From the IMG/VR virus record IMGVR_UViG_3300042502_001233, positions 248,001 through 312,000 of that record: a stretch of 64,000 nucleotides of DNA. One strand, given 5' to 3'. Positions within the stretch are counted from its first letter, which is position 1, and each line of letters starts with the position of its first letter. This document shows positions 4,069 to 64,000 of this stretch, piece by piece. Both the position numbers and the translations under genes were made by a program. The notes beneath the pieces were generated by a model. The model had not been told where the DNA came from, did not search any database, and saw only the letters and a program-made list of their open reading frames with translations.

Positions 4069-4310
4069 GCCCCGTGGTCAGCCCAAAAATGGGGGTACGG
4101 AGGGAGGGGGGTAACGCCAGGATATACGTCCAGGGAGGGGTATGCAGGACTATCTCCAGCTTTAAGTATCTTATATCCATATACAACAAACGTGGTTTAA
4201 AACGTCTTATTTGCGGTCAAGTCAAATAAATGATATATGCAAATAAAGTTATTAACAATTTACATAGTTATTAACATTTGACAAAAACAAAAAAAGTTAT
4301 TAACATTTGT
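3975..4310. other. Non-coding boundary element: A/T-tract repeats, G-rich tract (4091-4140), three TTATTAACA repeats; candidate genome end or packaging region
   Basis: aaaattccccagaaaaattt / aaaatttccaggaaaaattt; gggggtacggagggagggggg...gggagggg. Confidence 0.45.
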
Positions 4311-30300: not shown

Positions 30301-32416
30301 CTTTTTGGACTTTTTGATTGTCATTCCCACCTTGTTTTTCTTCACTCATATGATTAAAATTTAATATTTCTTATGTCGTCAAAGTTTATATCGGACAACG
30401 ACTCAATAGGTTTAGGTTGATTTGTCTCAATAAATTTTTCTAATTCAAGCGTTTTGTTGAACGCTTCAAAATCAAACGTTTCTAGATACTTAGCAAGATA
30501 AGTCATAGAAGGTACGTATCTATAATACCTAGTCAAATCAGATAAACTTATCTTTATGATTTTACAACCATCAATTGTGCATAACGGTGAGTAATCTGAA
30601 ACCTTAAAACCATTCTTGATGTCGAATTCTTTACGTATAAACTTAGTCATATAAGAATTTACCAAAGAAATAATATCATCGTAGGTTGTGATTTTGTGTT
30701 TGTTAGCTTTCCATGATTCCAACACTCTGTTGCACTCACGTACCGTATTCTCAACGATATGTTTACATTTTACTTTTTGGGCGTCAGACCCATATACAAC
30801 TGCATCCATAATTTATTGTTTTTTCTTTCTTTCTTCGTCTTCTCTGTCATGTTCTATACCCAGAACATGCATTAATAATTCAAAAACACCAATGATAACC
30901 ATCATTATCATGGCACCTATCAAGATAATAACCTCTGGGGCTATTAACAATAGCACTAATAATATAACTAACCAAATCATCTTTATTTAGTTTTTTGTAT
31001 CACAAAACAAAATTTACCAGTTACACTGTTAGCGCTGTAAGTGTTTCCACCAGCATAACCAGCCACATGTTGTGCAGTTACTGATACTATTGACCAACCT
31101 TTTTCCAACCAATCATTAATGGTTTTCTCTGATTCTGTAATTATTACTTTTTGTTCCATAGTTATTTGTTTTTAATTATTTCGTAGTGACCACAAACTGT
31201 AATTTCTCGACCATAAGCGTCTATGAACACTATACAGTTATAGTCAAGAACTTCATACTTATTAGTACTATACCCTTGATTATCAGATACAATTCTATAT
31301 TTATGTGTTGGCATCGACCTTAATGTAGTATATATCATACCGAGTGCACAACATACCAAAAACGCTGCTAATAGTTTTAAACTTATTTGTTTCATGATTA
31401 ATTTTTTTTAACGTGTATGGTTGCTAATCGGTCAATGTATCTTCGACAGTTGCCGAAATCTATAATGATAAACTCACTAAAGAAAGATATCACTACACCA
31501 ACTTTTGAACCTTCTTCTCTAAAATTTACTTTTACGGTATCACCTTCTCTCGGAAATGTTTCTGTCCACATATAAATTATTTTTACAAATATACAATTAA
31601 TTTTTTAATTCTGCAACTTTTTATTAGGGCATAACCCAAAATAATTTTCCTTGGTCCCAACATACTGGTATGTTAGATAGAGGTTGTTCTATAGGAACTT
31701 TATATATCACCACGATACCATTATCAGTTTGCATGGTTACCGTTCTGGTGTGTTTACGTGTTGGTTCTGCATACAACACTTCTCCGTTGATTCGAATTGA
31801 TTCTTTGCAAATGTTCTGGTTAGATTTACAAGACATTACAATTACGCCCAACATAACTAAAATAAACTTATTCATTGGTAATTTCATTAGCGGTTAAAAA
31901 ATCTTTATCAACTTCTTTCCAATTATCTCTAATCCATTTGGCCACATGAATAAAACCAGCTTTGGCTTTGGTGAACTGTTCATCGGTAAGACTACCTTTC
32001 TCTGACACAATACCAAAAGCAAATCTTAGACCATTGCTTAGCATGGCTTCATCACTAAAGTTAAGTGTTTTGATTACTGGTATGTTGTCAGGGTCTGGAA
32101 TACCACCAAACTCTTGTAGTGCTGCCTTGGCGTGGTCGTTTAATTTTTTGAACATCTCTTGTCCTTTTATCTTATCAGCCACTTCTTCTAATTTGTCGCT
32201 TTGTACCACAATAGCCATTGGTTCAAATTCACCACCATTGTGTAAGTTAGGACAATCTTTGATATTGAACCAACCCATTTTGTTTTCCCTAGCGTATTGA
32301 GTACAATTTGGGTGTAACATAATTTGTTCATAATGTTGTTCATCTGCATCCTCTACTTTGTAACGTACTTCCCAAGTCCCCTTGTTGAAGATGTACTGTC
32401 CGTTTACTTTGTTCAT
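24314..32416 (-). CDS. Block of ~18 hypothetical genes, several membrane or lipoproteins; 24992 has DCVVRAI...GHA (papain-like Cys/His pattern)
   Basis: ORF track; signal peptides and lipoboxes in 24314, 26163, 28377, 31624. Confidence 0.65.
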
Positions 32417-32468: not shown

Positions 32469-33275
32469 TTAAATCGGTAAATTAATTTTACTTAAAATTT
32501 GATTTGATACGTGTGTATATATTTCAGTGGTTTTTACGTTAGCATGACCTAAACATTTTTGTATAATTCTTAAATCAGTACCAGCTTCCAACAGAGCGGT
32601 GGCTTGTGAATGTCTTAACAAATGAAAATGATATTCTTCACCAATATATTTTTTAACTATTTCATTACAACTTCTATGAGAATATTGTAAATTGTTACCT
32701 TGACCATTAAACAAATATTCTTTAGGTTTATACACTTTAAAATATTCACGCAAAAGATTTAAAACAATTGGTGACAAGGGAACGAATCTATCTTTTCTTC
32801 CTTTACTGTTTTTAATGTGTATTAACATTCGTTTACTATCAATATCTTCAATTTTTAAATTACACAATTCAGAAACTCGCATTCCTGTTGAATACGCTAA
32901 TGTAAGTATAGCTTTGTGTTTAATGTTTTCGATTTTAGATAATTTTTCGAGCAGAAACTCCTTTTCGATTATTTTTGGTAATTTTTTCTCTTTTCGTGGT
33001 CTTTTAAACGAAACCTTATCGTATTTTCTTTCTAATCCGTATTTATATAAAAACCTTATTGCGTTTATAACTTGATTTTGTTGTGAAACAGACGTGAATT
33101 TGTAATTATCTAAGTAATTCTGAAAATCTTTAGAATTTAAGTGAGCGACTTGTTTGTCCCCTACATTTTTAATGAAAGAGATAATGTGATACATATAATT
33201 TTCTTTTGTTCGTGGCGAGTAGTTAAGATATATAAACTTTTGTTCACAAATCTTTATAATTTTTTCGTTTAACAT
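32469..33275 (-). CDS. Integron-integrase-like tyrosine recombinase (short form, no IntI insertion)
   Basis: SQQNQVINAIRFLY, RPRKEKKLP, GMRVSE, KGRKDR, HLLRHS, LGH, TTEIYTHV; likely start MLNEK at 33275. Confidence 0.9.
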   Translation of the reverse strand: MLNEKIIKICEQKFIYLNYSPRTKENYMYHIISFIKNVGDKQVAHLNSKDFQNYLDNYKFTSVSQQNQVINAIRFLYKYGLERKYDKVSFKRPRKEKKLPKIIEKEFLLEKLSKIENIKHKAILTLAYSTGMRVSELCNLKIEDIDSKRMLIHIKNSKGRKDRFVPLSPIVLNLLREYFKVYKPKEYLFNGQGNNLQYSHRSCNEIVKKYIGEEYHFHLLRHSQATALLEAGTDLRIIQKCLGHANVKTTEIYTHVSNQILSKINLPI

Positions 33276-33294
33276 ACTGATTTTATTAATGGTT

Positions 33295-33325
33295 TGAGAT
33301 GTTTTTACATATATTATAGTTAGCA
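33295..33325 (+). other. Candidate attI-like site (crossover G|TT at 33319)
   Basis: First cassette starts GTTAGCACC just upstream of the integrase, with no attC hairpin to its left. Confidence 0.65.
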
Positions 33326-33331
33326 CCAATA

Positions 33332-33808
33332 CTACGATAGTGCTTCGATTTCAAGTATCATATCTTTATTTTTTACAGAAAAAACAAATTCACCTACATA
33401 TCCTGCGTCTTCTCCGTAAATAGCATCGCAACTATTCAATTCAGTTAGAAATTTGCTTGATAAGTCTTCTCCTAAAACATTTGAAAATAAATCAAGTTCT
33501 TCTTTGTAATTTGATGTAATTGCTATATCACCGATTACGAATAATCCTTGTTGTCTATTAAATCTATTTCCGTTTTTACCAGTTTTTTCACTATAAATTT
33601 TATTCCATTTATCTAATTTTAGAATATTATAATTTGTTGTATCTATGGTTATTTTATAACAATTATCACCGAATTTTTTAGCGTAATCTAAGTTAACCGC
33701 TAAATAATCAGCACCACTTCGGTTTTTATCATAAACACCATCAACACATTTATACACTGTGGTTTTACCAAAGTTTTTAACTTTATCTATTAATTCTCTT
33801 ATTTCCAT
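33332..33808 (-). CDS. Cassette 1 gene; possible ART-like fold
   Basis: VYK...YLAVNLDYAKKFG; the fold call is weak. Confidence 0.6.
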   Translation of the reverse strand: MEIRELIDKVKNFGKTTVYKCVDGVYDKNRSGADYLAVNLDYAKKFGDNCYKITIDTTNYNILKLDKWNKIYSEKTGKNGNRFNRQQGLFVIGDIAITSNYKEELDLFSNVLGEDLSSKFLTELNSCDAIYGEDAGYVGEFVFSVKNKDMILEIEALS

Positions 33809-33862
33809 ATTTTTACTTATAAATATTCCAAATTTAAAATTCTACCAAATAAACCGTAATGG

Positions 33863-33957
33863 TGCTAACAAGGTGTATAAGAAAGTTTGCTATCAAGTTC
33901 AGTGGTAAATTTGAAAGTTCCTATAAGCAAACCTTCTCATACACCCAATCGTTATAT
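33863..33957 (+). repeat. attC-like site 1 (family A)
   Basis: TAAC 33866, arms GGTGTATAAGAAAGTTTGCT / AGCAAACCTTCTCATACACC, GTT 33951. Confidence 0.9.
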
Positions 33958-34352: not shown

Positions 34353-34406
34353 ATATAACAAATGATAAACAACATTAAAACGATTGTTTATCATCAGACG
34401 TTAGTA
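34353..34406 (+). repeat. attC-like site 2 (short family B)
   Basis: TAAC 34356, ATGATAAACAA / TTGTTTATCAT, GTT 34400. Confidence 0.85.
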
Positions 34407-34765: not shown

Positions 34766-34820
34766 TACTAACAGCGTATAAAAAACATTAAAACGATTTT
34801 TTATACGCAAACCGTTATAA
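34766..34820 (+). repeat. attC-like site 3 (family B)
   Basis: TAAC 34769, GCGTATAAAAAA / TTTTTTATACGC, same acattaaaacga loop as site 2, GTT 34814. Confidence 0.85.
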
Positions 34821-34826
34821 CCAATA

Positions 34827-36731
34827 CTACTTTTCGTCTCCGTAAATTGGCATATATCTTTCATCGTAACCAACGATTTTTCTATGTTTATTATCATCAA
34901 TGTATTTATCATCAGCATTTTTTTGTTGGTCAAACTCTTCTTTAAGTTTGATTAACCCATCTCTTAGTTCTTTTGGCAAAAGAGATTCATCAGCTAAAAT
35001 TTCTTGTCTGATTTGTTCGTGTTTTTGGTGAATATTATTCCCATGTTCAATTATTTTTTCTATTTTATTCTCCATATTTTTAATTTTTAAAACATTCAAT
35101 TAGTTTAATACTTGGTAAATTCCAAACATCAATTATTTTATAATCTGAACCATCAGTATTTGTTAGTATGATATTATTCGGTTCAATTTTGAAATCTGTT
35201 CTTATACAAATACCAAGGTTTTTATCGTTTTCTCTAATAAGAAAAAATGGTTCAAAACTTTTACTAACATCAGCTTTGTATCTTTTATAATTATAAACAT
35301 CATGTTCACCTATAATATGAAAATCTTTAAAATTATCAAATATAACACAAATCTGTCCAGATGCTATAACAACATCTAAATCAAATTCTTTCATATAATA
35401 CCTAACGAAACTATTTAAACTTTCGTTATGTTCAAGTTGTGTAATATCATTATTTGGTTTTTTATAATCCCAAACATAATCTTTTACTTTATCAACATTT
35501 TTTTCATATTCCTTAAATGTTTTATATTCAAGTCTTTTTAATATTTCTTCCATATTTTAATATTTTAACAATAAATCATTCAATTCTATATCTAAACCAA
35601 ATAATGATTTTTCAATCACTTCACGTATTGTTAATGTTGGTTCATCTTTCATAATATTTAAACAAATTAACATTAGCTCATTTGTTCTATCTGTTTGGTT
35701 GGTGAATTTAATCACATAATCAATATATTTTAAATCATCAAAATGTTCCATATTTTTAATTTTCATATATTTTAAAAATTTCTTCAATTTTAACTATTTT
35801 ATTACCAAATAAAACTTTATCACCAATAAACTCGTATTTAGAAATAAGATAATTTTCAAACCAATGTAAAAAAATAACAATATCTTGGTATGAATATTCA
35901 CTTTCAATATCCATAAATATTTTATGGTCTAAAAACATCCCAATAGGGTAGTAAACCCAATCATCTGGATTTCTACTATCTACTTCATCCACTAATTCCC
36001 TACAAAAAGATAAATCATTAAAATGATGATTATATACGTGAGGCTCATACCCACCAATTTTATTTTTATATGGTAAATTTAAACTCTTAATAAAATAAGG
36101 TTTTTTTTCATAATTGACATTAGATTCATATAATGAATTACGAAGTTTTAGTTTAAGTTTTTCTAACTTTTTATCGTAGTTGGTATTTGTCTTCGCAACA
36201 AATCCTTTATTTTTAAATTCTTCAACTTCTTCATCTGAACAATCTTCAACCCATTTAATATCAATATCAATAAGTTCTGTTTCTACTGAAGTGTCATCGT
36301 TTATTTTAGTTTCTCCACGATAGGCAAATGGTATTAAACCATTTTCTGGTATTTTAAAATTTTTTTCCATATTTTATAAATTTATTTTATTGATTAATTG
36401 GATATATGAGTTAATAGGTAATTTTTCAGATAAATATTTTTTTATTATTTCTGAATTATTGTATTTTTTTGGGTTATCCAAAAACTCAAAAAGAATTTCT
36501 TTAAATAAATCTTTTTCAATATCACTTTCACTACAATAACTCATAAAATCACCAAATGATGGTATGAAAGTATTAATATCAGTCATTATTATTTATATGT
36601 TTTAGTATTTCTTTAATAACATCTACCCATTGATTGGTTTCAGTTATATGTTTAATTTTGTTTTCTGAAAAAGAAGATACTTGTCTAAGACCTTCTTTAT
36701 CTGTAATAATAATCTCCATTTTATTTTCCAT
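34827..36731 (-). CDS. Cassette 4: operon of six ORFs (34827, 35080, 35557, 35756, 36374 and a short ORF near 36586-36731)
   Basis: ORF track; own TATATTTG promoter box near 36746. Confidence 0.7.
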
Positions 36732-36800
36732 AATTTATTTTTTTTACAAATATACTAATTATTATTCAATTAATCAAGTTTTATCTTAAAATCACCGTAC

Positions 36801-36824
36801 TGGTTATAACAAATGTTATAACCA
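36801..36824 (+). repeat. Collapsed attC-like site 4
   Basis: tggttaTAAC-aaat-GTTataacca; no hairpin body. Confidence 0.7.
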
Positions 36825-36827
36825 ATA

Positions 36828-37849
36828 CTACTTTTCGTCTTCGTAAATCGGCATAAAGTTTTCAGAATAACCAACTATTTTCCTATGTTTATTCTCTTCG
36901 ATATATTTATCATTAGCTATTTTTTGTTGGTCAAATTTTTCTTTAAGTTTTATTAACTCATCCTTTAGTTCTTTTGGTAAAAGAGACTCATCAGCTAAAA
37001 TTTCTTGTCTGATTTGTTCATGTTTTTGGTGAATACTATTTCCATATTCAATTATTTTTTTTATGTTATTCATGATTAAACGTATATTTTATATTTATTT
37101 TCTTTATAAGTTATTAATAATAATTCTCTAGGTATAACAGATAATGTATCTAACCAATTATGTCTTTCAGTTTCTGTTTTCTCCAAATATATATCTTCTC
37201 TAATGGTGTTTAAGCAGTCCGTTCTTATTATTGTGTTGAAATTGTCTGATAAAACCAATCTATTTTCTAATTCTAAATTAGTTTTAATAACGTTTAAACC
37301 AATACTTTGATATTGGTTCGTGGTTTTTGTGATTTCATTTATAAAATCACACATTTTTAAGTGCTTTAAAGATGGTTCATTTTTAGTAACTAAACTAAAA
37401 AATTCAAAATCAGTATCTTTATTCAACCAATCATACTTTTTAATCGAAATTATTAGTTTTAATTTATCACGATATTCATCAACTTCAGTTTTTGAAAGTT
37501 CTCCGACCATAACCCACGTTAAATCTTCAATAAATGTTTCATTACCATCAATGGGTGTTAACTTAGCTTTCGGAACGCCAATCATTGTTTCTTGTTCATA
37601 TTTATTACCACATTCTATTAACGATTTATTTGGATAACTTGTTTTTGTATCAGTTTTATAAATAAAATTAACTTTCCTTGGAATAAAATATTCTTCCAAT
37701 TCTTTAAATATTTCTGGATACCTTTCTTTTAAATATGAGTCACATTTTACGTAGTCAATACCATATCTAAAAGTCGTTTTATGTAATGCTAAAGAATAAC
37801 TTTTAATCACATCAATCAAATTATTTATATTATATATGCTTTTTTTCAT
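36828..37849 (-). CDS. Cassette 5: two ORFs (36828, paralog of 34827; 37076)
   Basis: ORF track; ends nearly identical to cassette 4. Confidence 0.75.
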
Positions 37850-37921
37850 AATTTATTTTTTTTACAAATATACTAATAATTATTCAATTAGTCAAGTTTT
37901 ATCTTAAATTCACCGTACTGG

Positions 37922-38015
37922 TTATAACAAGGTGTATAAGAAAGTTTGCTATTAAGTTTAGTTGTAATTTGAAAGTTCATCTAAGCAAACCTTCTCATAC
38001 ACCCAATCGTTATGT
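37922..38015 (+). repeat. attC-like site 5 (family A)
   Basis: TAAC 37925, GTT 38009. Confidence 0.9.
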
Positions 38016-38091: not shown

Positions 38092-39033
38092 TTATTTTTT
38101 TTCAGTTATTAAATTATTATCTAAAGCATAAAATAATTGTATAAAGTATCTTTTATCTTTTAATTTCACATCTCCAGTATAACTATCATATGTTCTACCG
38201 TTTGTCATTCTTATTTTCGATAATGGTTGAGTTCTTAATAATTGAATGTCTTTTTCATTCATATTAAAGTATGATTCACCATCACAGTTAAATTTTTTCC
38301 AAGATTTTTTAGTAATCTTTTCACCATTTTCAAAAAGAATAATAATCTCATCATTTTCATTACATCCACCAATACCTACCATTGTAGTAGTAATCATTGA
38401 AAATGATAGTTTATCAGAGTTTATGTGTGTTGATATTCTGAATCCAATTTTTCCAACATCGTTAGCACAGATAAAATCTCTACTTCCATATACATATGTT
38501 TCCCCACTCATAACATCAGTTTCCTTTACTACATAAACACTGTCTTTTGATGTTTGTCCAAAAGATACTATTGTCATTAAACACATCATTAGTGTCATCA
38601 TCATTACTTTTAAATTTTTCATTTTTATTTATTTTAAGTTAATTATTTTTTAATTTCTACAATCAATCATTACAGTTCCACCACCACAAATATACACATC
38701 ATTAACGTGAGTGTTATTTTTATAATGTTCTTTTAAATCACTTTTTAATGTCTCATATTCATTACCATTTACAACTTTTTCAATTCTAACATTAATTAAT
38801 CTACCAGTTGGCATTACTTTATATGAACCATCCTTTGTGTATTTTGTATATTCCTGACCACCTAACATCCCATAACTTTGGTATGTGGTTTGTAAAGATT
38901 CAACAAACTCATCAGTTATTTGATACAACTCTGTGTTTGGTTCTATAATGTTTTTCACTTTATCACCAACACCATTACAAGACATCATAAAAACAGCCAA
39001 TAATCCCATTAAAATTAATTTTACTTTTTTCAT
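38092..39033 (-). CDS. Cassette 6: secreted protein (38092) and lipoprotein (38650)
   Basis: Signal peptide ...VSFGQ; lipobox FMMSC; TACCTTTG box near 39096. Confidence 0.75.
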
Positions 39034-39202
39034 TTTATTTGTTTTTTTAATTTACCTACTCTAAATCAGTTTTCGGTTTCCCTGTTTTTGTTTTACAAAG
39101 GTAAGTATAATTTCTTAAATAAAAAAATATTTCCCCTTCTTTTTTTCTAAAATTTTCTTTTAGTGCTTCAATTGAAGTTCATCGCTTAATAATCACACCT
39201 AC

Positions 39203-39297
39203 ACATAACAAGGTGTATAAGAAAGTTTGCTGTAAAGTTTGGTGGTAAAATTGAAAGTTCGTCTAAGCAAACCTTCTCATACACCCAACCGTTAGCA
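39203..39297 (+). repeat. attC-like site 6 (family A)
   Basis: TAAC 39206, GTT 39291. Confidence 0.9.
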
Positions 39298-39303
39298 CCA
39301 ATA

Positions 39304-39732
39304 CTACGTCCATTGCGGAGAATCAGGCATTTCATATCCAAGTTCTTGTAATTTCAGGTATCCGAAAAAGTGATTTTTATTATATCCTGATATTTCGTCA
39401 TCTGAACTATATTCAGTAAACCAAACAGATTTATGGTGAAACTGCATTCTACACTTTGATATAGTAGTAAAATAACCATCACTTACGGTATCTTGGCTAA
39501 GTAGCTCTACATCAATTGAACAATCCCCATACTTTCTAAATGATTCATAAAAATCAAGCCCAAGTATTCCGTTTCTTGAAATTATAGTGTTAACTGTCAA
39601 AGGGTGTATTCTGTTAATAACTGAAATTACATCTTCGTCAGTAATATCAATTAGTCGTTTCAAAACCGTACTGGTGCTAACAGCACCTATACCCAATTGG
39701 GCAGTTTCGTTGTTTTTTGAAGTTTCTTCCAT
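39304..39732 (-). CDS. Cassette 7 gene (start inside attC7)
   Basis: N-terminal TAQLGIGAVS encoded by the attC arm. Confidence 0.75.
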   Translation of the reverse strand: MEETSKNNETAQLGIGAVSTSTVLKRLIDITDEDVISVINRIHPLTVNTIISRNGILGLDFYESFRKYGDCSIDVELLSQDTVSDGYFTTISKCRMQFHHKSVWFTEYSSDDEISGYNKNHFFGYLKLQELGYEMPDSPQWT

Positions 39733-39807
39733 TTTATTAAGTTTTATCTGTTATTGAAAATTTGTGCTATTTATTGCCCAACTGGGCATAGCTACAATCC
39801 GTTAGCA
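39675..39807 (+). repeat. attC-like site 7 (family C)
   Basis: TAAC 39678, CTATACCCAATTGGGCA / TGCCCAACTGGGCATAG, GTT 39801. Confidence 0.88.
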
Positions 39808-40095
39808 GTAATCAGGATGAACTGCTAAATAATGTAAGTAAATAGAATGAATTTTTGGCTTACCAATACAAGTTAATAAACTAACTTGTTCTGCATTAAT
39901 AAATTCTGCTATTGGAATTTTACCTGAAATATCAATTCGTAATATTTTAATTGGCTCTTTAGATTTATCAAAAGTGTTGTAAAAAATATTTTTTTTAATT
40001 AAATCTATTTCTTTTAAAAATAAATCCGAAAAGACTACTGCTAACACATTATTGTCGCAATTGGCGGTTTTGGTACTCTCTGAATGTTTTGTCAT
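39802..40095 (-). CDS. Cassette 8 gene (start inside attC8, stop at the crossover TTA)
   Basis: ORF track. Confidence 0.7.
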   Translation of the reverse strand: MTKHSESTKTANCDNNVLAVVFSDLFLKEIDLIKKNIFYNTFDKSKEPIKILRIDISGKIPIAEFINAEQVSLLTCIGKPKIHSIYLHYLAVHPDYC

Positions 40096-40172
40096 TACTT
40101 TTATTTTTAGTGATTAATCAATAGTTTGTTTTGTGTTTGTCGCCACCTGACGACAATAATCCAACGTTAAAT
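40039..40172 (+). repeat. attC-like site 8
   Basis: TAAC 40042, ATTATTGTCG / CGACAATAAT, GTT 40166. Confidence 0.85.
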
Positions 40173-40499
40173 GCAAGTTATCCCAAAATCACGTTTAAGA
40201 ATTTTGATACAATTTTCCTTATTAAGTGATGAAATATAAATGCAATTTTCTTTTTTAATAACTTTTTTATTTTTCTTTTTAAAATTACCATTAACAGCAT
40301 CGTTCCAATGAATCTCTTTTATTTCAAGCTCGAAAACGGCTAATTCAATAGTTCTTTTATTTAAATCAAACTCAAACAAAATGTGATTTTCGTGTGGTAT
40401 AATTCTTGAATCAAAAACTTTTTGAATTTCTGCTTGTTGCTGTTTAGTGATTTCAATTTTATCTTTTACTTTGTCTTTTTCAAAATCGGATAATCTCAT
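40167..40499 (-). CDS. Cassette 9 gene
   Basis: Stop at the crossover TTA. Confidence 0.75.
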   Translation of the reverse strand: MRLSDFEKDKVKDKIEITKQQQAEIQKVFDSRIIPHENHILFEFDLNKRTIELAVFELEIKEIHWNDAVNGNFKKKNKKVIKKENCIYISSLNKENCIKILKRDFGITCI

Positions 40500-40510
40500 A
40501 TTTAACCTGC

Positions 40511-40643
40511 ATTTAACAGCCGTTTGGCAAGATTAGTGCTTTAGGGCTTAATTTATAATTGTCTTGTATTTGTTATTTAAGTGATAAAATGATAGTTTTA
40601 CGCTTATTTATCACTAACCTCGCCAAGCGTGAAAACGTTAGCA
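40511..40643 (+). repeat. attC-like site 9
   Basis: TAAC 40514, TTGGCAAGATTAGTG / CACTAACCTCGCCAA, GTT 40637. Confidence 0.85.
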
Positions 40644-40982
40644 GTCATTGCTACCATACGTTTCCAAATCGAAAATTTCGCCAACTTCATTTCTATATTG
40701 AAATTTAAAATTGTCTGTTAAATTTCGTGTCAATGATGCACTTGAAAATACTTTTTTATTTTGAACACAACTTGCAATATCTTCAATCTTTGCTCTACCA
40801 AAATCGTAGCTATCACCGTGCAAAGTAAATATTGAATTATCTCTATCAAGTGTCCACCATCCACCGCCTTTAACCTTTGAAATATCGGTTGCAAGTTGTT
40901 TATGATAAGTACATTTTGCCACTATTAAGCAGTCGCCTTCTTGGTCATCTGTTTCGATTATAAATTTTGGGAATACATCCAT
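40638..40982 (-). CDS. Cassette 10 gene
   Basis: Likely start MDVFPK; GGGWW...G.S.DFG motif. Confidence 0.75.
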   Translation of the reverse strand: MDVFPKFIIETDDQEGDCLIVAKCTYHKQLATDISKVKGGGWWTLDRDNSIFTLHGDSYDFGRAKIEDIASCVQNKKVFSSASLTRNLTDNFKFQYRNEVGEIFDLETYGSNDC

Positions 40983-41021
40983 TTTTAAATTGAGTTTTGT
41001 TGTTAATAATCCGCAACGAAC

Positions 41022-41152
41022 TGCTAACATAGTGTTGCCAAAATGGGGGCAGACGTGCATTTAATGAACATTTGTACTGTATTCAGCAGTAGTGCTTTTA
41101 ATGGGCTTTTGTACTATAAATCCCCTACTTCGGCAACACTCAGCCGTTAGCA
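41022..41152 (+). repeat. attC-like site 10
   Basis: TAAC 41025, AGTGTTGCC / GGCAACACT, GTT 41146. Confidence 0.85.
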
Positions 41153-41162
41153 GTAATTATTG

Positions 41163-41387
41163 CTAACCGTTGTACATAGAAAAAGCCACTACATCGAAGT
41201 CGCCTAAAAAATCTTCTTTCTTTCTTGTCACGATAACTTGAACTTGTATTTCTTCATTTTCATTTATAACTAAACTTCCACAAGAGGTTGAAAAAGCATA
41301 GTTTTCTTGGTTTTCTGCTAATTTTTCAGCACATTCTTTGATTGCTCCTTTCAAATAAAGCGAATCGATTAATTTTTCTAAAGCCAT
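41163..41387 (-). CDS. Cassette 11 gene
   Basis: Likely start MALEK. Confidence 0.7.
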   Translation of the reverse strand: MALEKLIDSLYLKGAIKECAEKLAENQENYAFSTSCGSLVINENEEIQVQVIVTRKKEDFLGDFDVVAFSMYNG

Positions 41388-41408
41388 AATATTTGGTATT
41401 ATAACTAC

Positions 41409-41539
41409 TGCTAACATTCGCTATACAATAGTTGGGTTAATTTTTAAATTTAAAGTTCAGTTTGTACTTTTTTAATCAGTCTTTAATCGAAGTTTGGGTC
41501 TGTACCTTTCCCAACCATCGTATAGCTTTTCCGTTATAA
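41409..41539 (+). repeat. attC-like site 11
   Basis: TAAC 41412, GCTATACAATAGTTGGG / CCCAACCATCGTATAGC, GTT 41533. Confidence 0.85.
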
Positions 41540-41544
41540 GCCAT

Positions 41545-41793
41545 TTAAAGCGGAAACCTACTACGACAATATTCTCCATCATTTTTTTCGTAAAAACTTC
41601 TTGCATCTTCACGAGTTCCTACAAAAACACATCTATCCTCTTGCATAATATAAACACATTCTCTATTCCATAAAGCAAGTGGTATTTTAAACCATTTCGC
41701 ACCATCTTCAATATCATCGTGTACATGAAGAGAAAAACGGCTTATAACAGCGGTTTTGTCGCATTGTGGCACTTGGTCTTTTTCTGTATTCAT
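41545..41793 (-). CDS. Cassette 12 gene (start inside attC12)
   Basis: MNTEKDQVPQCDKTAVISR. Confidence 0.7.
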   Translation of the reverse strand: MNTEKDQVPQCDKTAVISRFSLHVHDDIEDGAKWFKIPLALWNRECVYIMQEDRCVFVGTREDARSFYEKNDGEYCRSRFPL

Positions 41794-41877
41794 AGTTTTT
41801 AATTTAATTATTGTTTTATTTTTGTTAAGTTTGGTCTTTAATCGCCACAACGACGACAAAGCCACAGGACGTTAGTA
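41742..41877 (+). repeat. attC-like site 12
   Basis: TAAC 41745, GTT 41871. Confidence 0.85.
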
Positions 41878-41882
41878 GCCAT

Positions 41883-42086
41883 TTAAGAAAGTGCTTTTTT
41901 CAACGCTTTCAATATTCTTTGGCACTCTTTCTTTTCTTCACCAACATTATTCCAAACAAGAAACTCATAAGTACTTATCATTCCTTCTGCTGTATCTCGT
42001 CTTATTTTAACATTAACAAAACGGCTACTAACAGCACCTATACCCAATTGGGTAGTTTCTTGGTTATTCAAATTTTCGTGTTCCAT
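41883..42086 (-). CDS. Cassette 13 gene (start inside attC13)
   Basis: MEHENLNNQETTQLGIGAVSSR. Confidence 0.7.
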   Translation of the reverse strand: MEHENLNNQETTQLGIGAVSSRFVNVKIRRDTAEGMISTYEFLVWNNVGEEKKECQRILKALKKALS

Positions 42087-42158
42087 ATTTACTTTATTTT
42101 AAGTTGATAATTTTGTGTTTCAAATCGCCCAACTGGGCATAGCTGCAAAACGTTAGCC
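42026..42158 (+). repeat. attC-like site 13 (family C)
   Basis: TAAC 42029, arms nearly identical to attC7, GTT 42152. Confidence 0.88.
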
Positions 42159-42164
42159 GTAATT

Positions 42165-42431
42165 CTAATCACGCCAAGTGATGTGCATTGCTTCTAACTT
42201 ATCCCCAAGTATCGGACTGCCATAGTTTTCAAACTTCATTTTAATTGAAGGATAAACTTCCAATCCATTTGGACATTGTGTTTTTAATGGTAGCTTTCGT
42301 TTATCTTCTGAAATTCGTAATGCTTCTAAAATGAAGTCATTCAAACTTTTATCTTCGGAAGAAGAACTACGGCTAACAACGTATTGCTGAACATTGCCAG
42401 CTTCATCGGTAATTTGAACTTTGTATTCCAT
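42165..42431 (-). CDS. Cassette 14 gene (start inside attC14)
   Basis: MEYKVQITDEAGNVQQYVVSRS. Confidence 0.7.
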   Translation of the reverse strand: MEYKVQITDEAGNVQQYVVSRSSSSEDKSLNDFILEALRISEDKRKLPLKTQCPNGLEVYPSIKMKFENYGSPILGDKLEAMHITWRD

Positions 42432-42504
42432 ATCAACCTTTTATTTTAAATTAAACATTTGTGCTTCTAAATTGGCAACGTCAGCAATACGCAAAACGTT
42501 ATAC
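42371..42504 (+). repeat. attC-like site 14
   Basis: TAAC 42374, CGTATTGCTGA / TCAGCAATACG, GTT 42498. Confidence 0.85.
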
Positions 42505-42520
42505 ACAATATTTTTACCAA

Positions 42521-43020
42521 TCACACCGCATAAATCCATAATTGAGTTATTTGTTCGTCAGTAATATTTTCTGGTGTTATATCATATTCACCATATTTTT
42601 TCATATATGTTATATATTCTAATTTCATATCTTTGGATAACGAGTTCCAAAAATTTAATGATTTTTGTCTGTCTTCCATTTCTTCATCATTCATAACTCT
42701 AATTATTTTATGTTCTAATAATTGTGGTGCAATAATACCTTGATTATATAACCAACTCGCTAACTTAAATTGTAGTCTTACTAATAGTGTTTTCATTTCT
42801 TATTTATTATTTATTAAAATTACTCGAAAATAGGTAAAAAAGTTTCGTTATCATAACCAATAATCTTTTTACCGTTTTTTATATTATCGTTTATCCATTT
42901 ATCTTCTTCAGACCACTTTGTTTCAAATTCTGTTTTTAAATTATTCATTCGGTCTTTTAAATCTTGTGGGATATTATCATTATTTAATATCTCATTTCTT
43001 AATTGTTCGTGTTTTTCCAT
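42521..43020 (-). CDS. Cassette 15: two ORFs (42521; 42820, paralog of 34827/36828)
   Basis: ORF track; TATATTTG box near 43035. Confidence 0.7.
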
Positions 43021-43085
43021 AATTCTATTTTTTACAAATATACTAATTTATTTCTAATTTATCAACCCTCCCACAAAAATACTGT

Positions 43086-43179
43086 GTATAACAAGGTGTA
43101 TAAGAAAGTTTGCTATCAGCATTTGTGGTAATTTTAAAGTTCATCTAAGCAAACCTTCTTATACACCCAACCGTTATAG
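43086..43179 (+). repeat. attC-like site 15 (family A)
   Basis: TAAC 43089, GTT 43173. Confidence 0.9.
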
Positions 43180-43557: not shown

Positions 43558-43653
43558 CTATAACACGGGTTTGACGTAATGCCACCAGATAGTTTAGGCT
43601 AAATTTAAAGTTCGTGCAAGGTGGCACTAACGCCAAGCCCGAAACCGTTATGA
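43558..43653 (+). repeat. attC-like site 16 (last)
   Basis: TAAC 43561, CGGGTTTGACGTAATGCCAC / GTGGCACTAACGCCAAGCCCG, GTT 43647. Confidence 0.85.
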
Positions 43654-44118
43654 AAACCATTCTGGTAATTCTCTACCTTTCCATTTGGCTAATTTCCTTT
43701 TCTCTGTTCTATAATATTCTCTGTAGCTATCCACAGCATCACCAACCTTGCATTCGTCTGGCATAGCCAAAGCAAATGGTGTTATATCACTATTGTATTT
43801 CAATTTAGGTTTATGTATTAAACACCATTCAATTACCGCTTGTGACTTATGTCTTTTTTCGTAACGATATGTGTATTCTTTGCACAATTCAAGTCCCAAA
43901 TCACAAAGCCAAATGTAGTTTTCCATACATTCTCTGGCCCATATTGCACTTGGATGATTTTTATGGGATAACTTGTATGGTATATCATACCCAGATTCTA
44001 CTACGTGATGAACGCCACACAACAATTGTGCATATTCAACTATCATCTTGGTACAATGGCGATTTACATGGTATTTTGCACATTTTTTAACATCTAAATC
44101 TAAAACGAATATGTTCAT
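43648..44118 (-). CDS. Pyrimidine-dimer DNA glycosylase / endonuclease V family protein
   Basis: MNIF.LD...CA.YH...H..KM.VE.AQLL...H.NHP...W...EY..RY...H. Confidence 0.8.
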   Translation of the reverse strand: MNIFVLDLDVKKCAKYHVNRHCTKMIVEYAQLLCGVHHVVESGYDIPYKLSHKNHPSAIWARECMENYIWLCDLGLELCKEYTYRYEKRHKSQAVIEWCLIHKPKLKYNSDITPFALAMPDECKVGDAVDSYREYYRTEKRKLAKWKGRELPEWFS

Positions 44119-51300: not shown

Positions 51301-51923
51301 ATTTAAATCTTCATAATCTTTTTGACTAGAAGGTTTATCCTCGTTATCATCTGGATAGTCATTGGCTGGGTTTTTCTTGTTTAATGGTTTTTTAGTCTCT
51401 TCGCTGTTCTTGCCAGCTTCTAACATATTACCCAATAAACCTTCTCTAACCAATTGTTGTATTAATATCTTGCTCATCGTATTTTATTTTATTATAAATA
51501 TCATGAAACATGATAAAAATCAACTAACTACTGCATTTTTTTACCATAACTTTTACTGGTGATAGCTCTTTTAGGTATCGAATAATCATATTGAGTCGAA
51601 TCAAACACATCATCTGGTGATTCATACAATATCTTATTCATATCTTCAAGACTCAATTCAACATTATAACCAGTGGCTTCATAAATTTTGTAACGGAAAT
51701 CAGTGATTCGGTTGTTGACCTCAATAGCTTTATTTTCTGACCACTTTTCCCATATTGGGAACAAAGTATCTTCATCAATATTAAAAATGCTCATAATCGT
51801 TTGCATCACACTTCTGAGGCCAACTTCTGAACCATCGAAGTTATCCACTAACTTATACGACACCAAAGTTGATAAGGTGAATATATAGTTGTTTTCTAGA
51901 TATTTCGTAATCATTTGTTCCAT
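48303..51923 (-). CDS. Block of ~9 hypothetical genes
   Basis: ORF track. Confidence 0.65.
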
Positions 51924-52801
51924 TACGCAAAGTTTTCGTAGGCAGATTTCATTCTAACACTGTTTTTGAATTTTTTAAGTGTTTTTTCTCTAACTTGACG
52001 AACCATTTCACGTGTTAAGTTAACGTCTTTACCTACTTCTTCAAGTGTTCTAGCTGCATGACCATTTAAACCAAACAAAGATTCCATAATATACTTGTCT
52101 CTCGGTTTAAGAGTTTCAAGAAGCACGTTGATTTCTTCAACAACATCACTATTGTTTAACAAATAGTCTGTTGATTTATCTGTATCATCAGAAATCAAAT
52201 CACCCAATGTTGAACTGTTACCTTCATCATTGTTGATTTCTCTATCCAAAGAGTCCACATTAAATGTAGACAAGGAATCTAAGAATTCAAATTCATCAGT
52301 AGTCATTTCGTTACCGAATGCACTAATAACTTCTTGAATATCGACTCTGTGGTTGTTCTTTTGCTCCAACTCACTAACCAATTTATCCAACTTTGACAAG
52401 TTGTTGATTTTATTGGCTGGAAGTCTAACTATTTTACCGTGTTTAGAAATGTGTTCTAAAATAATTTTTCTAATTGACCATACGGCAAACGATATAAATT
52501 TATAACCCATACTTGGTTGAAACTTCTTCACAGCCAAAATAAGTCCAATGTTACCTTCGTTTACTAAGTCTTCCAATGGAATCTTGTCTGTTGCATATTT
52601 TTTAGCCACAGAAATCACAAAACGTAAGTTTCTTTCAACCAATTCATCAGCAGCAGCTTTGTCACCATTTAAGACTTTTTCAGTCAACTTAGCTTCTTCA
52701 TCAGGTGTTAGCATAGGTATATCATTAACCTCTCTCAAATATTGTTTGAAAGATGCTATATCTCTGTTAGTAAGTTTGGAGGTAATTTTAAATTTTTTCA
52801 T
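51923..52801 (-). CDS. RNA polymerase sigma70-family factor (RpoD/RpoS-like)
   Basis: NLRFVISVAKKY, DLVNEGNIGL, KFISFAVW.IR, region 4 TLEEVG...LTREMVRQ. Confidence 0.92.
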   Translation of the reverse strand: MKKFKITSKLTNRDIASFKQYLREVNDIPMLTPDEEAKLTEKVLNGDKAAADELVERNLRFVISVAKKYATDKIPLEDLVNEGNIGLILAVKKFQPSMGYKFISFAVWSIRKIILEHISKHGKIVRLPANKINNLSKLDKLVSELEQKNNHRVDIQEVISAFGNEMTTDEFEFLDSLSTFNVDSLDREINNDEGNSSTLGDLISDDTDKSTDYLLNNSDVVEEINVLLETLKPRDKYIMESLFGLNGHAARTLEEVGKDVNLTREMVRQVREKTLKKFKNSVRMKSAYENFA

Positions 52802-59020: not shown

Positions 59021-59686
59021 CTATTTTTTTATTTCTACCACAATTGGTTTGTTTTGCACTTGGTAGTTGAAGTTAAGTATTGATGCGTTTACAAACACCC
59101 CACCATCTGGAAACTCAAACTTACCGTATGCTTCGTGGATATGACCACACACAAATAGCTTTAGGTTGGTCATTTCAGCAGACTTCTCCAATAAATAAGG
59201 ACAGCCAGTAGATACACCTCTAGTTGTCATATCCAAGAAACCTTTCATTGGACCATGTGTTATAAGCACATCGGTATCCAACGGTATCATATCCCAATGT
59301 TGACATATATCAGTACCCATTCTATTAAACGCCCAATCATAAAACCATGGGGTGACTCCACTACCATGAAATTTTAACCCTTCAATTTCTACATTAGTAT
59401 CATGTAAATAAATTATTGTTGGGTATTTTTCTTGTAACATTTCGTTGACAGCAAAAGTACTAACTTTTTCAAACCAAAAATCATGATTACCTGGAATAAA
59501 AATTTTGTATTTATAATTTAAAGCATTATACCAACTTAAGAAATCTTCAACCTCTCTTAGACTTCCTCTTCCAGATATATCACCAGCGTGTATTATCATG
59601 TCAATAGAACCATCTTTATTATCTAACCAATCTGGCGGTATGCGGTGATGTATTGAATGGGTGTCACTTATACATGTAATAGTCAT
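59021..59686 (-). CDS. Metallophosphoesterase (MPPED/239FB-like)
   Basis: SDTH, HAGD, GNHD, THGP, GHIHE. Confidence 0.9.
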   Translation of the reverse strand: MTITCISDTHSIHHRIPPDWLDNKDGSIDMIIHAGDISGRGSLREVEDFLSWYNALNYKYKIFIPGNHDFWFEKVSTFAVNEMLQEKYPTIIYLHDTNVEIEGLKFHGSGVTPWFYDWAFNRMGTDICQHWDMIPLDTDVLITHGPMKGFLDMTTRGVSTGCPYLLEKSAEMTNLKLFVCGHIHEAYGKFEFPDGGVFVNASILNFNYQVQNKPIVVEIKK

Positions 59687-60543
59687 ATTTCATTTATTTT
59701 TTCTAAACATGTGATACTTAAACATTCACTCCATCCTTCAAATGGTAATTTAGGCATCACTTTATAATTTTTATATTCTTTAATTAATCTTTTCTCCATA
59801 TCATAAATTTTAGATGGGTTATCCTCGATTAATTTTATTATTTCAAACTGGTAATTTTTTAAACTTCTATAACGTTCTTTTACAGTATTAGATGTAATAC
59901 CAAATTTTATAAATTCTTCGTTTTTATTAAAAACCCTTAAAATATAAAAAAAAGCTGTTTTACCTTTGGTTTTTTTTAACCATGATTCTTTACTAAAACC
60001 AACACTTCCACATTTTTTACAACCATGACCACATAAATGTGATTCAATTAATTGGTCAAATTCACCATGTATTGGACAATTAATTTTTATTTTAACCTTA
60101 CCATTAGTATAATCAAAAGTTTTATAAGAATAAAAATTATTATGTACTTTATTAGCTTTAAATACGAACAGTTTATATTTTTCAGTACACGTCTCAATAC
60201 TTATTTTAGAACCTTTAAGTAAATCGTAACATTGTGGTGTATATTTAAAACCGTTTACGTCTTCAACTAATAAAGATTCTTTCATTCCATTATAGTCTAA
60301 CAATTTTAATGTTGGGTGTAACAATTTTATCTTTGATTCGATGTATTTTTCTTTATCAACAACTGATTGAATATTAAAAGATGATTTTAATAAATTATAA
60401 CCATTACTTTTTCGATAAAGCCAACCATCACTATCTTCAACTATTATTTCAGAGGTAACATTAGTAAATTTTACTATTTTAAAATTTGGGAATTTTTCAT
60501 TAAATTTATTAATAAAAGATTCATTTGCTTCTTTATGTTTCAT
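59683..60543 (-). CDS. Homing endonuclease, CPIHG repeat plus GIY-YIG-like C-terminus (related to 13394)
   Basis: FYIL...FIKFGIT...F.GWSEC. Confidence 0.75.
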   Translation of the reverse strand: MKHKEANESFINKFNEKFPNFKIVKFTNVTSEIIVEDSDGWLYRKSNGYNLLKSSFNIQSVVDKEKYIESKIKLLHPTLKLLDYNGMKESLLVEDVNGFKYTPQCYDLLKGSKISIETCTEKYKLFVFKANKVHNNFYSYKTFDYTNGKVKIKINCPIHGEFDQLIESHLCGHGCKKCGSVGFSKESWLKKTKGKTAFFYILRVFNKNEEFIKFGITSNTVKERYRSLKNYQFEIIKLIEDNPSKIYDMEKRLIKEYKNYKVMPKLPFEGWSECLSITCLEKINEI

Positions 60544-62713: not shown

Positions 62714-64000
62714 TTAAAGATTAATTAACGACAAATTTATGTTCTTTTTCTCAACATCTACACTGGATACAATCACATGAACCATGTCCCCAAGTCTAAT
62801 CTTGTGACCTGTGTTATAACCTTTTACGCAATGATTGTTGGTATCAGCTTGATAAGTATCACCGTTGATGTCTGATAGTTTTATGAACCCATCACATTTG
62901 TTCTCTAGTATCTCTACAAACAAACCGTAATCAGTTACAGAACTCACAATACCTTTGAATACTTTGCCAATGTTTTCACTCATATAAACACATTGCATGT
63001 ATTTGATTGAATCACGTTCTGCTTTCTGCGCCTTCTTCTCTCTTTCAGATAAATGTTGGCATCTGGTTTCAAGCTTCTCAATTTTAGGTAGCGTTGGTTT
63101 GTTCTCCAAGTACAACCCTAACAGTCTGTGTGTTATAACGTCTGGATAACGTCTAATCGGACTGGTGAAGTGGCTGTAGTCTTTAAAACCAAGACCATAG
63201 TGACCAATGTTTTTAGTTGTGTAGTTTGCTTTCTGCATTGTTCTCACAACCAAGTTGTTAATCATATCTTCCTCAGCAGTACCTCTAACATCCAACAACA
63301 ACTGGTTAAGAGTTCTTGTGGTTTCCTCTGGTGTGTCAATACGAATCTCATAACCAAACTGTGAAATAAATTCCTTTAAGTTATTTAATTTATCATCGTT
63401 AGGTTTATCATGTGCTCTGTTTACATTAGGCAACTCTCGTTTGTTTATGTATTGAGCAACATGTCTGTTTGCCAACAACATAAATTCCTCAATCAACTTG
63501 TTTGAGTCTTTGGCTACCTTGAAGTGGATACCAATTGGCTTGTTGTTTTCATCCAACTTGAATTTAACCTCTTGTTTATCAAAGGATATTGAACCTTTCT
63601 TTGAACGAGTCTTACGCATTCTCTGTGCTATCTTATTTAACAATCTAACTGCATCAAACATTTTCTTTACTTCCGTAGCGTATCTCATGCTACTGTCAAT
63701 ATTCATGTTTTTCATAAATTCAAAATCAGATATGTCGGTTTCTCCTTTACCTTCTGATTCAATAATTATTTGTGCTTCTTCATATGTAAGTCTACAATCA
63801 GAGTTAATCACAGTTCTACCGAACCATTCTTCAAGCACATGACCGTTTTGGTCAATCTTAAACACCGCTGAGAAACACAATTTGTCCTCGTTAGGTCTAA
63901 GACTACACAATCCGTTAGACAAGTTCTCAGGAAGCATTGGAACACATCTGTCAACTAGATACACACTGGTACCTCTGGCAAACGCTTCTTTATCCAATTG
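62714..64000 (-). CDS. rnr: Ribonuclease R (RNB + S1), 5' part outside the window
   Basis: RGTSVYL, LIEEFMLLAN, HYGLG...YSHFTSPIRRYPD, S1 domain. Confidence 0.93.
   Translation of the reverse strand, partial: QLDKEAFARGTSVYLVDRCVPMLPENLSNGLCSLRPNEDKLCFSAVFKIDQNGHVLEEWFGRTVINSDCRLTYEEAQIIIESEGKGETDISDFEFMKNMNIDSSMRYATEVKKMFDAVRLLNKIAQRMRKTRSKKGSISFDKQEVKFKLDENNKPIGIHFKVAKDSNKLIEEFMLLANRHVAQYINKRELPNVNRAHDKPNDDKLNNLKEFISQFGYEIRIDTPEETTRTLNQLLLDVRGTAEEDMINNLVVRTMQKANYTTKNIGHYGLGFKDYSHFTSPIRRYPDVITHRLLGLYLENKPTLPKIEKLETRCQHLSEREKKAQKAERDSIKYMQCVYMSENIGKVFKGIVSSVTDYGLFVEILENKCDGFIKLSDINGDTYQADTNNHCVKGYNTGHKIRLGDMVHVIVSSVDVEKKNINLSLINL

Follow-up and report, generated by a model that had tools for sequence, protein, structure and literature searches.

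The window analyzed here is a 64,000-nucleotide stretch of a 362-kb viral contig from IMG/VR (record IMGVR_UViG_3300042502_001233, positions 248,001 to 312,000). It contains an integron-like array of small genes separated by 16 hairpin sites with TAAC/GTTA cores (33.9 to 43.65 kb), located next to a gene for a tyrosine recombinase (32469..33275, minus strand; 268 aa from the first ATG). All array open reading frames (ORFs) run in the direction of the recombinase, and the hairpin sites and ORFs described below are on the minus strand. The recombinase showed Pfam matches to Phage_integrase and SAM_4. The NCBIfam models XerA_Arch (186 bits) and integrase_gron (159 bits) both scored below their cutoffs (TIGR02249, 159 bits against a cutoff of 265). 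The best PDB hits were XerA-like 4a8e (3e-35) and XerA 5hxy, with the R, K, HxxR, H, and Y motifs aligned. The alignment to 4a8e was continuous, whereas that to VchIntIA (2a3v) was split, with 35 query residues facing 82 IntI residues. The protein is thus XerA-like and lacks the insertion (I2 region) specific to integron integrases. Thirty-four viral loci carry the recombinase at 57 to 100% identity, and all 34 relatives are of similar short length. The nearest cultured phages, Cellulophaga Ingeline and Polaribacter Freya, have an integrase only 39% identical, and no array was seen in Ingeline.

An attI-like site (33276..33326) adjoins the recombinase gene, with the core GTTAGCA at 33320-33326 on the plus strand (TAA|C on the coding strand), about 45 nt before the recombinase ATG. 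In about 30 related loci, the sequence is variable up to TAAC and conserved thereafter (TATWATATAT ... AATAAAATCAAT ATG). The flanks of the recombinase are not conserved between phages, and a variable island in a conserved backbone could therefore not be shown.

Hairpin sites and cassette genes

Sites 1 (33866..33954), 5 (37925..38012), 6 (39206..39294), and 15 (43089..43176) are short hairpins, with no embedded start in site 1. Sites 2 (34356..34403) and 3 (34769..34817) are minimal (about 50 nt). In the degenerate site 4 (36807..36818), the two cores are only 4 nt apart, so the flanking cassettes are fused. Site 16 (43561..43650) is the farthest from the recombinase. Beyond it, an ORF of 156 aa (43648..44118) ends on the TAA of the last core, but no hairpin lies upstream of it, so it is backbone rather than a cassette. 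A hairpin-like hit at 30946-31045, beyond the recombinase, looks like coding sequence and was not counted.

The earlier note stated that five ORFs start in the A-rich central part of their sites and read through one arm and the core, and that four ORFs stop on the core. Both statements were confirmed. In site 7 (39678..39804; TAAC at 39678, GTTA at 39801), ATG 39732 lies 51 nt inside the site and starts an ORF of 142 aa (39304..39732), the TAG stop of which lies 12 nt before the next core. In site 8 (40042..40169), ATG 40095 lies 50 nt inside and starts an ORF of 97 aa (39802..40095) that has no later ATG. In site 12 (41745..41874), the ORF list extends the gene to a GTG at 41865, but its first ATG (41793) lies 45 nt inside the site (ORF 41545..41793). 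ATG 42086 lies 54 nt inside site 13 (42029..42155; ORF 41883..42086, 67 aa), and ATG 42431 lies 54 nt inside site 14 (42374..42501; ORF 42165..42431, 88 aa). All five of these sites are of the long type, and all five ORFs read through the low-coordinate arm and the core. In the minus-strand fold, the ATGs sit in the unpaired loop. The leaders of cassettes 7 (MEETSKNNETAQLGIGAVS) and 13 (MEHENLNNQETTQLGIGAVS) are as the note described, and the bodies after them are unrelated.

The gene behind the long site 9 (40514..40640) starts at 40499, 18 nt after the core (ORF 40167..40499, 110 aa). Site 10 (41025..41149) has a loop ATG at 41060 and a second ATG formed with the core G (ATG|TTAGCA), and the start of its ORF (40638..41060, 140 aa) is ambiguous (loop, core, or downstream ATG). 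In site 11 (41412..41536), the start codon is formed by AT plus the core G (41417; ORF 41163..41417, 84 aa). GTTA begins at 39801, 40166, 40637, and 43647, so the ORFs at 39802, 40167, 40638, and 43648 end exactly on the TTA (TAA on the coding strand).

Pfam, NCBIfam, and PHROGs searches gave nothing significant for the cassette proteins in the window, and no Rfam family matched the hairpins. A Bacteroidota-type -7 promoter motif (TAnnTTTG on the coding strand; motif match only) is present at 43035..43042 on the minus strand, 15 nt before ATG 43020. It is the nearest such motif upstream of the promoter-less cassettes 14 to 7; none lies between 39.3 and 42.5 kb, although such motifs do precede the genes behind short hairpins.

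Cassette units, folding bias, and shared leaders

To define the cassette unit, we compared related viral loci (designated by L and a number). Locus L025 (399-893) matched L038 (7703-8197) at 99.4%, and the match was bounded by ATAAC GGTTG on both sides. In the pairs L063/L075, L065/L073, L050/L067, and L053/L058, the shared segment ended at TAA(C), and the next hairpin differed. Each gene thus travels with the hairpin on its 5' side, and the cassette ends on TAA|C, which is the reverse of integron cassettes. The matching cores and the location of the extra bases were symmetric or ambiguous with regard to polarity and were not used. The note was therefore right that the sites serve their own cassette gene. 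However, because the crossover core lies upstream of the hairpin, ordinary cassette exchange moves leader and body together and does not produce the N-terminal swapping that the note had suggested.

Hairpins were detected in related loci using a stem scan of our own design, which missed 3 of 15 window sites (8, 12, and 16) and gives some false positives. A strict pattern search for cores plus matching arms found nothing, and a generic inverted-repeat search, an energy-based scan, and a permissive stem scan were too noisy. Hairpins clustered upstream of the recombinase on its coding strand and were rare downstream. In a scan treating both strands alike, 141 hairpins had 226 G.T pairs on the coding strand against 53 A.C (p = 1e-26), and the minus strand was the more stable strand in 14 of 15 window sites. 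This bias is consistent with folding of the coding strand but could reflect mRNA folding only. The stems align without gaps; instead of extrahelical bases, the sites have a bulge of 3 to 5 nt, and the 5' spacer is 3 to 4 nt longer than the 3' spacer in 95 of the 141 hairpins.

Embedded starts were more frequent than expected by chance. Among 64 long hairpins from related arrays, the frame that reads the core GTT as a codon was open for a median of 18 codons upstream of the core, against 10 and 11 for the other frames, and held an ATG at least 30 nt upstream in 32 sites, against 8 and 8. The 20 nt before the loop ATG were 56% A and 4% G. In 54 hairpins with an ORF open across the core, the first ATG was in the loop in 31, in the 3' arm in 3, at the core in 2, and downstream in 16. 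In several cassettes another start is possible, such as an ATG inside a GTTATG core, an ATG or GTG formed with the core G, or an ATG 8 to 20 codons downstream.

The exact arm plus core of sites 7 and 13 occurred 29 times in 28 viral loci. All 29 copies had a loop ATG in the same frame and were joined to 20 unrelated protein bodies that diverge right after the core, as the note had predicted. After the core, that frame stayed open for a median of 71 codons, against 11 and 0. Most loci found through the leader pattern held no recombinase within the DNA retrieved. In addition, a 153-nt hairpin is 98.7% identical between L025 and L048, with the identity bounded exactly by TAAC and GTTATA, and the bodies are unrelated. 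In L052, the 5' arm is lost but the leader is kept. An N6/N4 DNA methylase in L002 has no start codon other than the loop ATG, and its conserved sequence starts 3 residues after the core. In a C5-methylase in L018, the Pfam domain starts right at the core.

Interpretation of the array

These results favor, with reasonable confidence, a phage-borne, integron-like cassette array run by an XerA-like tyrosine recombinase, although recombination by this enzyme, folding as single-stranded DNA and/or mRNA, and initiation at the loop ATG are inferred from the sequences of uncultivated viral contigs. On the coding strand, each cassette reads C, a bulged hairpin, GTTA plus a variable core extension, the gene body, and a matching core extension ending in TAA, with new cassettes inserted at TAA|C next to the recombinase gene. 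Short hairpins (about 50 or 90 nt) are followed by a separate leader, often with a Bacteroidota-type promoter motif. Long hairpins (about 125 nt) carry an A-rich, G-poor loop with an ATG, from which the frame runs through the 3' arm and the core (GTT usually read as Val), resulting in a leader of 15 to 30 residues fused in frame to whatever lies behind the core. On a read-through transcript, the hairpin would display the start codon in its open loop, which suits hosts that initiate translation without a Shine-Dalgarno sequence. The last leader residues (e.g., QLGIGAVS or KLHISDVS) are set by the arm and core sequence that the recombinase needs, and the TAA of the crossover core also serves as a fail-safe stop codon. 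The view of the note that the site doubles as a translation-initiation module is thus supported at the sequence level, whereas gene birth from captured DNA remains speculation.

Of the alternatives, the least unlikely, and one not exclusive of the above, is that the leader is itself a functional tag (e.g., a targeting, packaging, or cleavable signal) maintained by selection on the peptide. Different hairpin families end in similar residues ([KQ]L[NHG]I[GSA][AD]V[SIM]). However, the conserved residues are exactly those coded by the paired arm and core, the loop-coded part varies freely in sequence and length, and many cassettes in the same arrays lack any leader. It is also unlikely that the embedded starts are an ORF-calling artifact, with real starts at or after the core and an upstream open frame shared only by descent. 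Alternative starts do exist in some cassettes, and copies of one hairpin family share the leader by common descent, but each distinct body is an independent junction, and in 19 of 20 the long ORF is in the leader frame. The frame bias also holds across different hairpin families, the loops are A-rich and G-poor directly before the ATG, and the L002 methylase and three ORFs among the long hairpins have no or only very distant alternative starts. Equally unlikely is that the hairpins are mRNA elements for stability, processing, or translational control, spread by homologous recombination and unrelated to the recombinase. The G.T bias on the transcribed strand and the leader hairpins without a recombinase in the DNA retrieved would fit this view. 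However, arrays sit directly upstream of the recombinase in about 25 loci, the conserved/variable junction falls exactly at a TAAC core, cassette units break exactly at TAA|C, and the two cassette ends are complementary over 10 to 17 nt, as in integron cassettes. Classical polarity, in which each hairpin belongs to the gene upstream and lends its start to the next cassette, would fit the core stop codons, which resemble integron genes ending in R'', and a common frame would make such swapping workable, but it is contradicted by all five informative pairs and by the insertion site at the recombinase end of the array.

More tentatively, the array may represent an undescribed class of gene-capture platform in giant phages of Bacteroidota, in which an I2-less, Xer-type recombinase handles bulged hairpins folded from the coding strand and each hairpin acts as a 5' expression adaptor. 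Any DNA joined behind the core in that frame would then become a translated protein, making the array both a store of counter-defense genes (methylases are among the cargo) and a possible source of new phage proteins.

Comparison with known systems

Integrons are the standard example of gene capture by site-specific recombination, and how their promoter-less and often start-less cassettes are expressed, and how a gene first becomes joined to its site, are long-standing questions. We found no published description of the present system, in which the site sits in front of the gene and brings the start codon and first codons with it. It extends cassette arrays with a dedicated recombinase to very large phages, and its hairpin sites appear to be served by an enzyme lacking the insertion thought to have made single-strand recombination possible in integrases (PMC7790495). 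If translated, the leaders give a simple rule for annotating hundreds of phage ORFs with otherwise ambiguous starts, and a compact natural part for expressing genes in Bacteroidota.

As in integrons, a tyrosine recombinase gene sits next to an insertion site, followed by an array of small, mostly unknown genes separated by imperfect palindromes with AAC/GTT cores (RYYYAAC and GTTRRRY in attC sites). The cassette ends are complementary, hairpin structure is kept while sequence varies, and one strand folds better than the other. Unlike integrons, the recombinase lacks the I2 region (and may act on double-stranded sites), the sites carry a bulge beside one core rather than extrahelical bases, the hairpin lies 5' of its gene, genes run towards the recombinase and in its direction, there is no Pc-type arrangement, and the host is a giant phage. 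The enzyme is closest in sequence to XerA, XerC, and XerD, but Xer sites (including pdif modules) are short double-stranded sites with two arms that do not form arrays at a fixed insertion site, whereas this enzyme is associated with arrays of hairpins of 50 to 130 nt. ORF-11/ORF-18 in attI1 and short ORFs inside attC sites (reviewed in PMC8876359) likewise place a start codon in a recombination site and help the expression of a cassette gene. Those are separate short ORFs that work by translational coupling and end before or near the real start, whereas here no stop separates the loop ATG from the body, and the site-coded ORF supplies the N terminus. In the reverse integron of Treponema denticola (PMC4909258, PMC7691350), the integrase and cassette genes also point the same way, and a stop codon can lie in a core site, but the order is intI, attI, and cassettes, with attI at the 3' side of intI and attC 3' of each gene. 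Here the cassettes come first and read towards attI, at the 5' end of the recombinase gene. Finally, attC clusters without an integrase (CALINs) in virulent phages, including Polaribacter phage P12002L with methylase cassettes (PMC9892861), share attC-like hairpins between small genes in phages of marine Flavobacteriia and DNA methylases among the cargo. Those clusters have 2 to 4 sites, no recombinase, canonical attC models, and no reported site-coded starts, whereas here arrays of 10 or more sites sit beside a dedicated recombinase.

The array and its neighboring tyrosine recombinase

All of the ORFs in the array lie on the minus strand, and on the plus strand each repeat runs from a TAAC core to a GTTA core, with 16 such repeats between positions 33866 and 43650. 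We confirmed every coordinate in an earlier note, which had proposed, from the sequence alone, that recombination sites supply the start codons of their own cassette genes. The ATGs at 39732, 40095, 41793, 42086, and 42431 lie 45 to 54 nt inside hairpin sites 7, 8, 12, 13, and 14, respectively, in the unpaired A-rich loop of the minus-strand fold, and the corresponding ORFs read through the arm and core. ORF 41545 is listed from a GTG at 41865, but its first ATG is the loop ATG. The leaders MEETSKNNETAQLGIGAVS and MEHENLNNQETTQLGIGAVS precede unrelated sequences. ORFs 39802, 40167, 40638, and 43648 end on the TAA of a core, and two further ORFs (40638-41060 and 41163-41417) have an ATG whose G is the core G.

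The array abuts the 5' end of a gene for a 268-aa tyrosine recombinase (32469-33275, minus strand). The best matches of this enzyme are archaeal XerA-type proteins, to which it aligns continuously. In contrast, the alignment to the Vibrio integron integrase breaks where the IntI-specific insertion lies, with 35 residues facing 82. The enzyme falls below the curated cutoffs of both the XerA and the integron-integrase models. The window is a piece of a 362-kb IMG/VR viral contig, and 34 viral loci, several of them from contigs of 195 to 362 kb, carry the same short recombinase at 57 to 100% identity. PHROG hits to a phage sigma factor (51923-52801) and to endonucleases, including two paralogous HNH/endonuclease-like genes (13394-14095 and 59683-60543, minus strand; PHROG 681), fit a phage origin. 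The window also contains a PcfJ-like protein (2031-3260) and a truncated RNB/S1 RNase II-like gene (62714-63997). A few relatives sit in MAGs labeled Flavobacteriaceae and others. The nearest cultured phages (Cellulophaga and Polaribacter phages) are only 39% identical, and no array was seen in the one that we inspected.

In about 25 loci, hairpins with the same anatomy cluster directly upstream of the recombinase on its coding strand, and they are rare downstream. In the window, a hairpin-like hit with AAC/GTT ends (22 of 24 pairs) lies downstream of the recombinase, across a gene junction (30946-31045, minus strand), but it is probably due to chance. In comparisons between phages (e.g., locus L015 against loci L017, L023, and others; L numbers denote the loci compared here), the recombinase is 60 to 85% identical, while the 10 kb on either side share 10% or less even by tblastx. 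The recombinase is therefore far better conserved than both of its neighborhoods.

Direction and limits of the cassettes

Core sequences alone cannot give the polarity of the array, because the cores flanking a gene match under either reading. However, three independent lines of evidence settle it. First, in about 30 loci the sequence upstream of the recombinase is conserved (TATWATATAT ... AATAAAATCAAT ATG) up to a TAAC, beyond which it is completely variable. This marks an attI-like insertion site with the crossover in TAA/C (the slash marks the crossover point), which in the window is G/TTAGCA at 33320.

Second, cassettes are shared between different arrays. Positions 399-893 of L025 equal positions 7703-8197 of L038 at 99.4%, and the shared piece runs from ATAAC GGTTG in front of a hairpin, through the gene, to the next ATAAC GGTTG. 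In the pairs L063/L075, L065/L073, L050/L067, and L053/L058, the identity ends at TAA(C), and the next hairpin is different. A gene therefore travels with the hairpin on its 5' side, and the claim of the earlier note that the sites serve "their own cassette gene" is correct.

Third, in a scan that treats both strands alike, 141 nonredundant hairpins have 226 G.T pairs on the coding strand against 53 A.C (p = 1e-26), and 95 of the 141 have 3 to 4 extra unpaired bases beside the 5' core. In the window, the minus strand is the more stable strand in 14 of 15 sites. The coding strand would thus correspond to the integron "bottom strand," with the cleaved core first, although folding of the mRNA would give the same G.T signal, these data are sequence based, the hairpin detector was ad hoc, and both recombination and single-strand folding are inferred. 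The genes, however, are on that strand, which is the reverse of integron cassettes. The stems have no extrahelical bases, which would fit an enzyme that lacks the part of IntI that reads them.

The contents of the cassettes in the window provided additional details. Three paralogous small proteins (66 to 90 aa, sharing HEQIRQEILADESLLPKEL and similar sequences) are encoded in three different cassettes (34827-35099, 36828-37073, and 42820-43020, minus strand), where each is the last gene before the cassette end. A promoter-bearing leader of about 80 nt is shared by two cassettes with different first genes (36720-36822 and 37850-37930). Site 4 (36807-36818) has lost its hairpin, so two cassettes are fused. 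Cassette 6 holds two ORFs (38092-38622 and 38650-39033, minus strand) whose N termini look like lipoprotein signals (a hydrophobic stretch followed by Cys). The long leader of this cassette, upstream of the lipoprotein-like ORF 38650-39033, contains a subthreshold Rfam match to the DUF805b RNA motif (39053-39086, minus strand; 29.3 bits against a gathering score of 35.6; E = 6e-5).

Start and stop codons within the sites

We examined 101 nonredundant hairpins from the related arrays. In 54 of them, an ORF of at least 35 codons is open across the core, and its first ATG is in the loop in 31, in the 3' arm in 3, at the core in 2, and downstream in 16. Loop starts occur only in the long (105 to 175 nt) hairpins, whereas short hairpins are mostly followed by a noncoding leader. 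In the 64 long hairpins, the frame that reads the core GTT as a codon is open for a median of 18 codons upstream, against 10 and 11 for the other frames, and it holds an ATG at least 30 nt upstream in 32 cases, against 8 and 8. The 20 nt before the loop ATG are 56% A and 4% G. An extreme form of a start codon in the loop was found at positions 1679-1982 of L004, where a whole 81-aa ORF lies inside the loop of a hairpin, flanked by arms of 26 to 28 nt. It is followed by an almost empty 25-nt cassette just before the recombinase.

The exact 24-nt arm plus core of sites 7 and 13 occurs 29 times in 28 viral loci, and every copy has the loop ATG in frame. The sequences after the core fall into 20 unrelated clusters, and the leader frame stays open for a median of 71 codons after the core, against 11 and 0 for the other frames. 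Other families behave alike. A 153-nt hairpin that is 98.7% identical between L025 and L048 is bounded exactly by TAAC and GTTATA and codes a 30-residue leader on two unrelated proteins.

Real use of the leaders is also supported by cargo of known family. The N6/N4 DNA methylase of L002 (326-1096) has conserved sequence from 3 residues after the core and no start codon other than the loop ATG. In the C5-methylase of L018 (544-1695), the Pfam domain begins at the core. The presence of these two DNA methylases suggests that the arrays store antirestriction functions. Additionally, in L052, about 130 nt upstream of the core at 4109 (minus strand), a copy of the site 7 hairpin has lost its 5' arm but keeps the loop, the ATG, and the leader as the start of, and in frame with, a 69-aa ORF.

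In the window, no Bacteroidota-type -7 motif lies between 39.3 and 42.5 kb, although such motifs do precede the genes behind short hairpins at 33829, 36747, 37865, and 43035. On the basis of these motif matches only, the leader-type cassettes 14 to 7 are probably read from the promoter of cassette 15.

Of 88 upstream ORFs in the related arrays, 14 end on the TAA of the TAA/C core. Another 24 of the 88 end on a TAG 12 nt earlier, in a recurrent end motif (TAGTATTGG...TAAC; TAGTATTGGnnnTAAC on the coding strand) that is found at cassette ends in many loci. In the window, the motif occurs at 39291-39307 and at 33320-33337, where it abuts the attI-like core. The core TAA is the last three bases of the cassette, so it acts as a built-in fail-safe stop. 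A stop codon in an integron core is already known (PMC7691350), but here it lies in the crossover core.

Alternative readings and relationship to integrons

The best-supported reading is that long hairpins double as a translation start module, although initiation at the loop ATG is inferred from the sequences of metagenomic contigs. In this reading, the stem leaves an A-rich loop with the ATG exposed on the mRNA, and the ribosome then reads through the 3' arm and core into the body of the gene. The last residues of the leader are dictated by the arm and core sequence. A functional leader peptide is possible and is not exclusive of this reading, but only the DNA-constrained residues are conserved. 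The independent in-frame junctions and the methylase argue against an ORF-calling artifact, and the exact TAAC junctions argue against RNA-only elements unrelated to the recombinase. Classical cassette polarity is rejected by the boundary comparisons.

The earlier note had also suggested N-terminal swapping. This does not follow from ordinary cassette exchange, because the crossover lies upstream of the hairpin. Still, one hairpin family is joined to many bodies exactly at the other core, and the same body occurs with two leader subtypes.

We found no description of this arrangement in the literature that was searched, a single collection, which is not proof of novelty. attC clusters without an integrase have been reported in virulent phages, including a Polaribacter phage with methylase cassettes, but no recombinase and no site-coded starts were reported there (PMC9892861). 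Site-borne ORFs are known in attI1 and attC, but they are separate coupling ORFs and not fused leaders (PMC8876359). The present system works like an integron but lacks three of its defining features, namely, the IntI insertion, the extrahelical bases, and the cassette polarity. It is also not the Treponema reverse integron, in which the integrase is upstream and attC lies 3' of each gene (PMC7691350).
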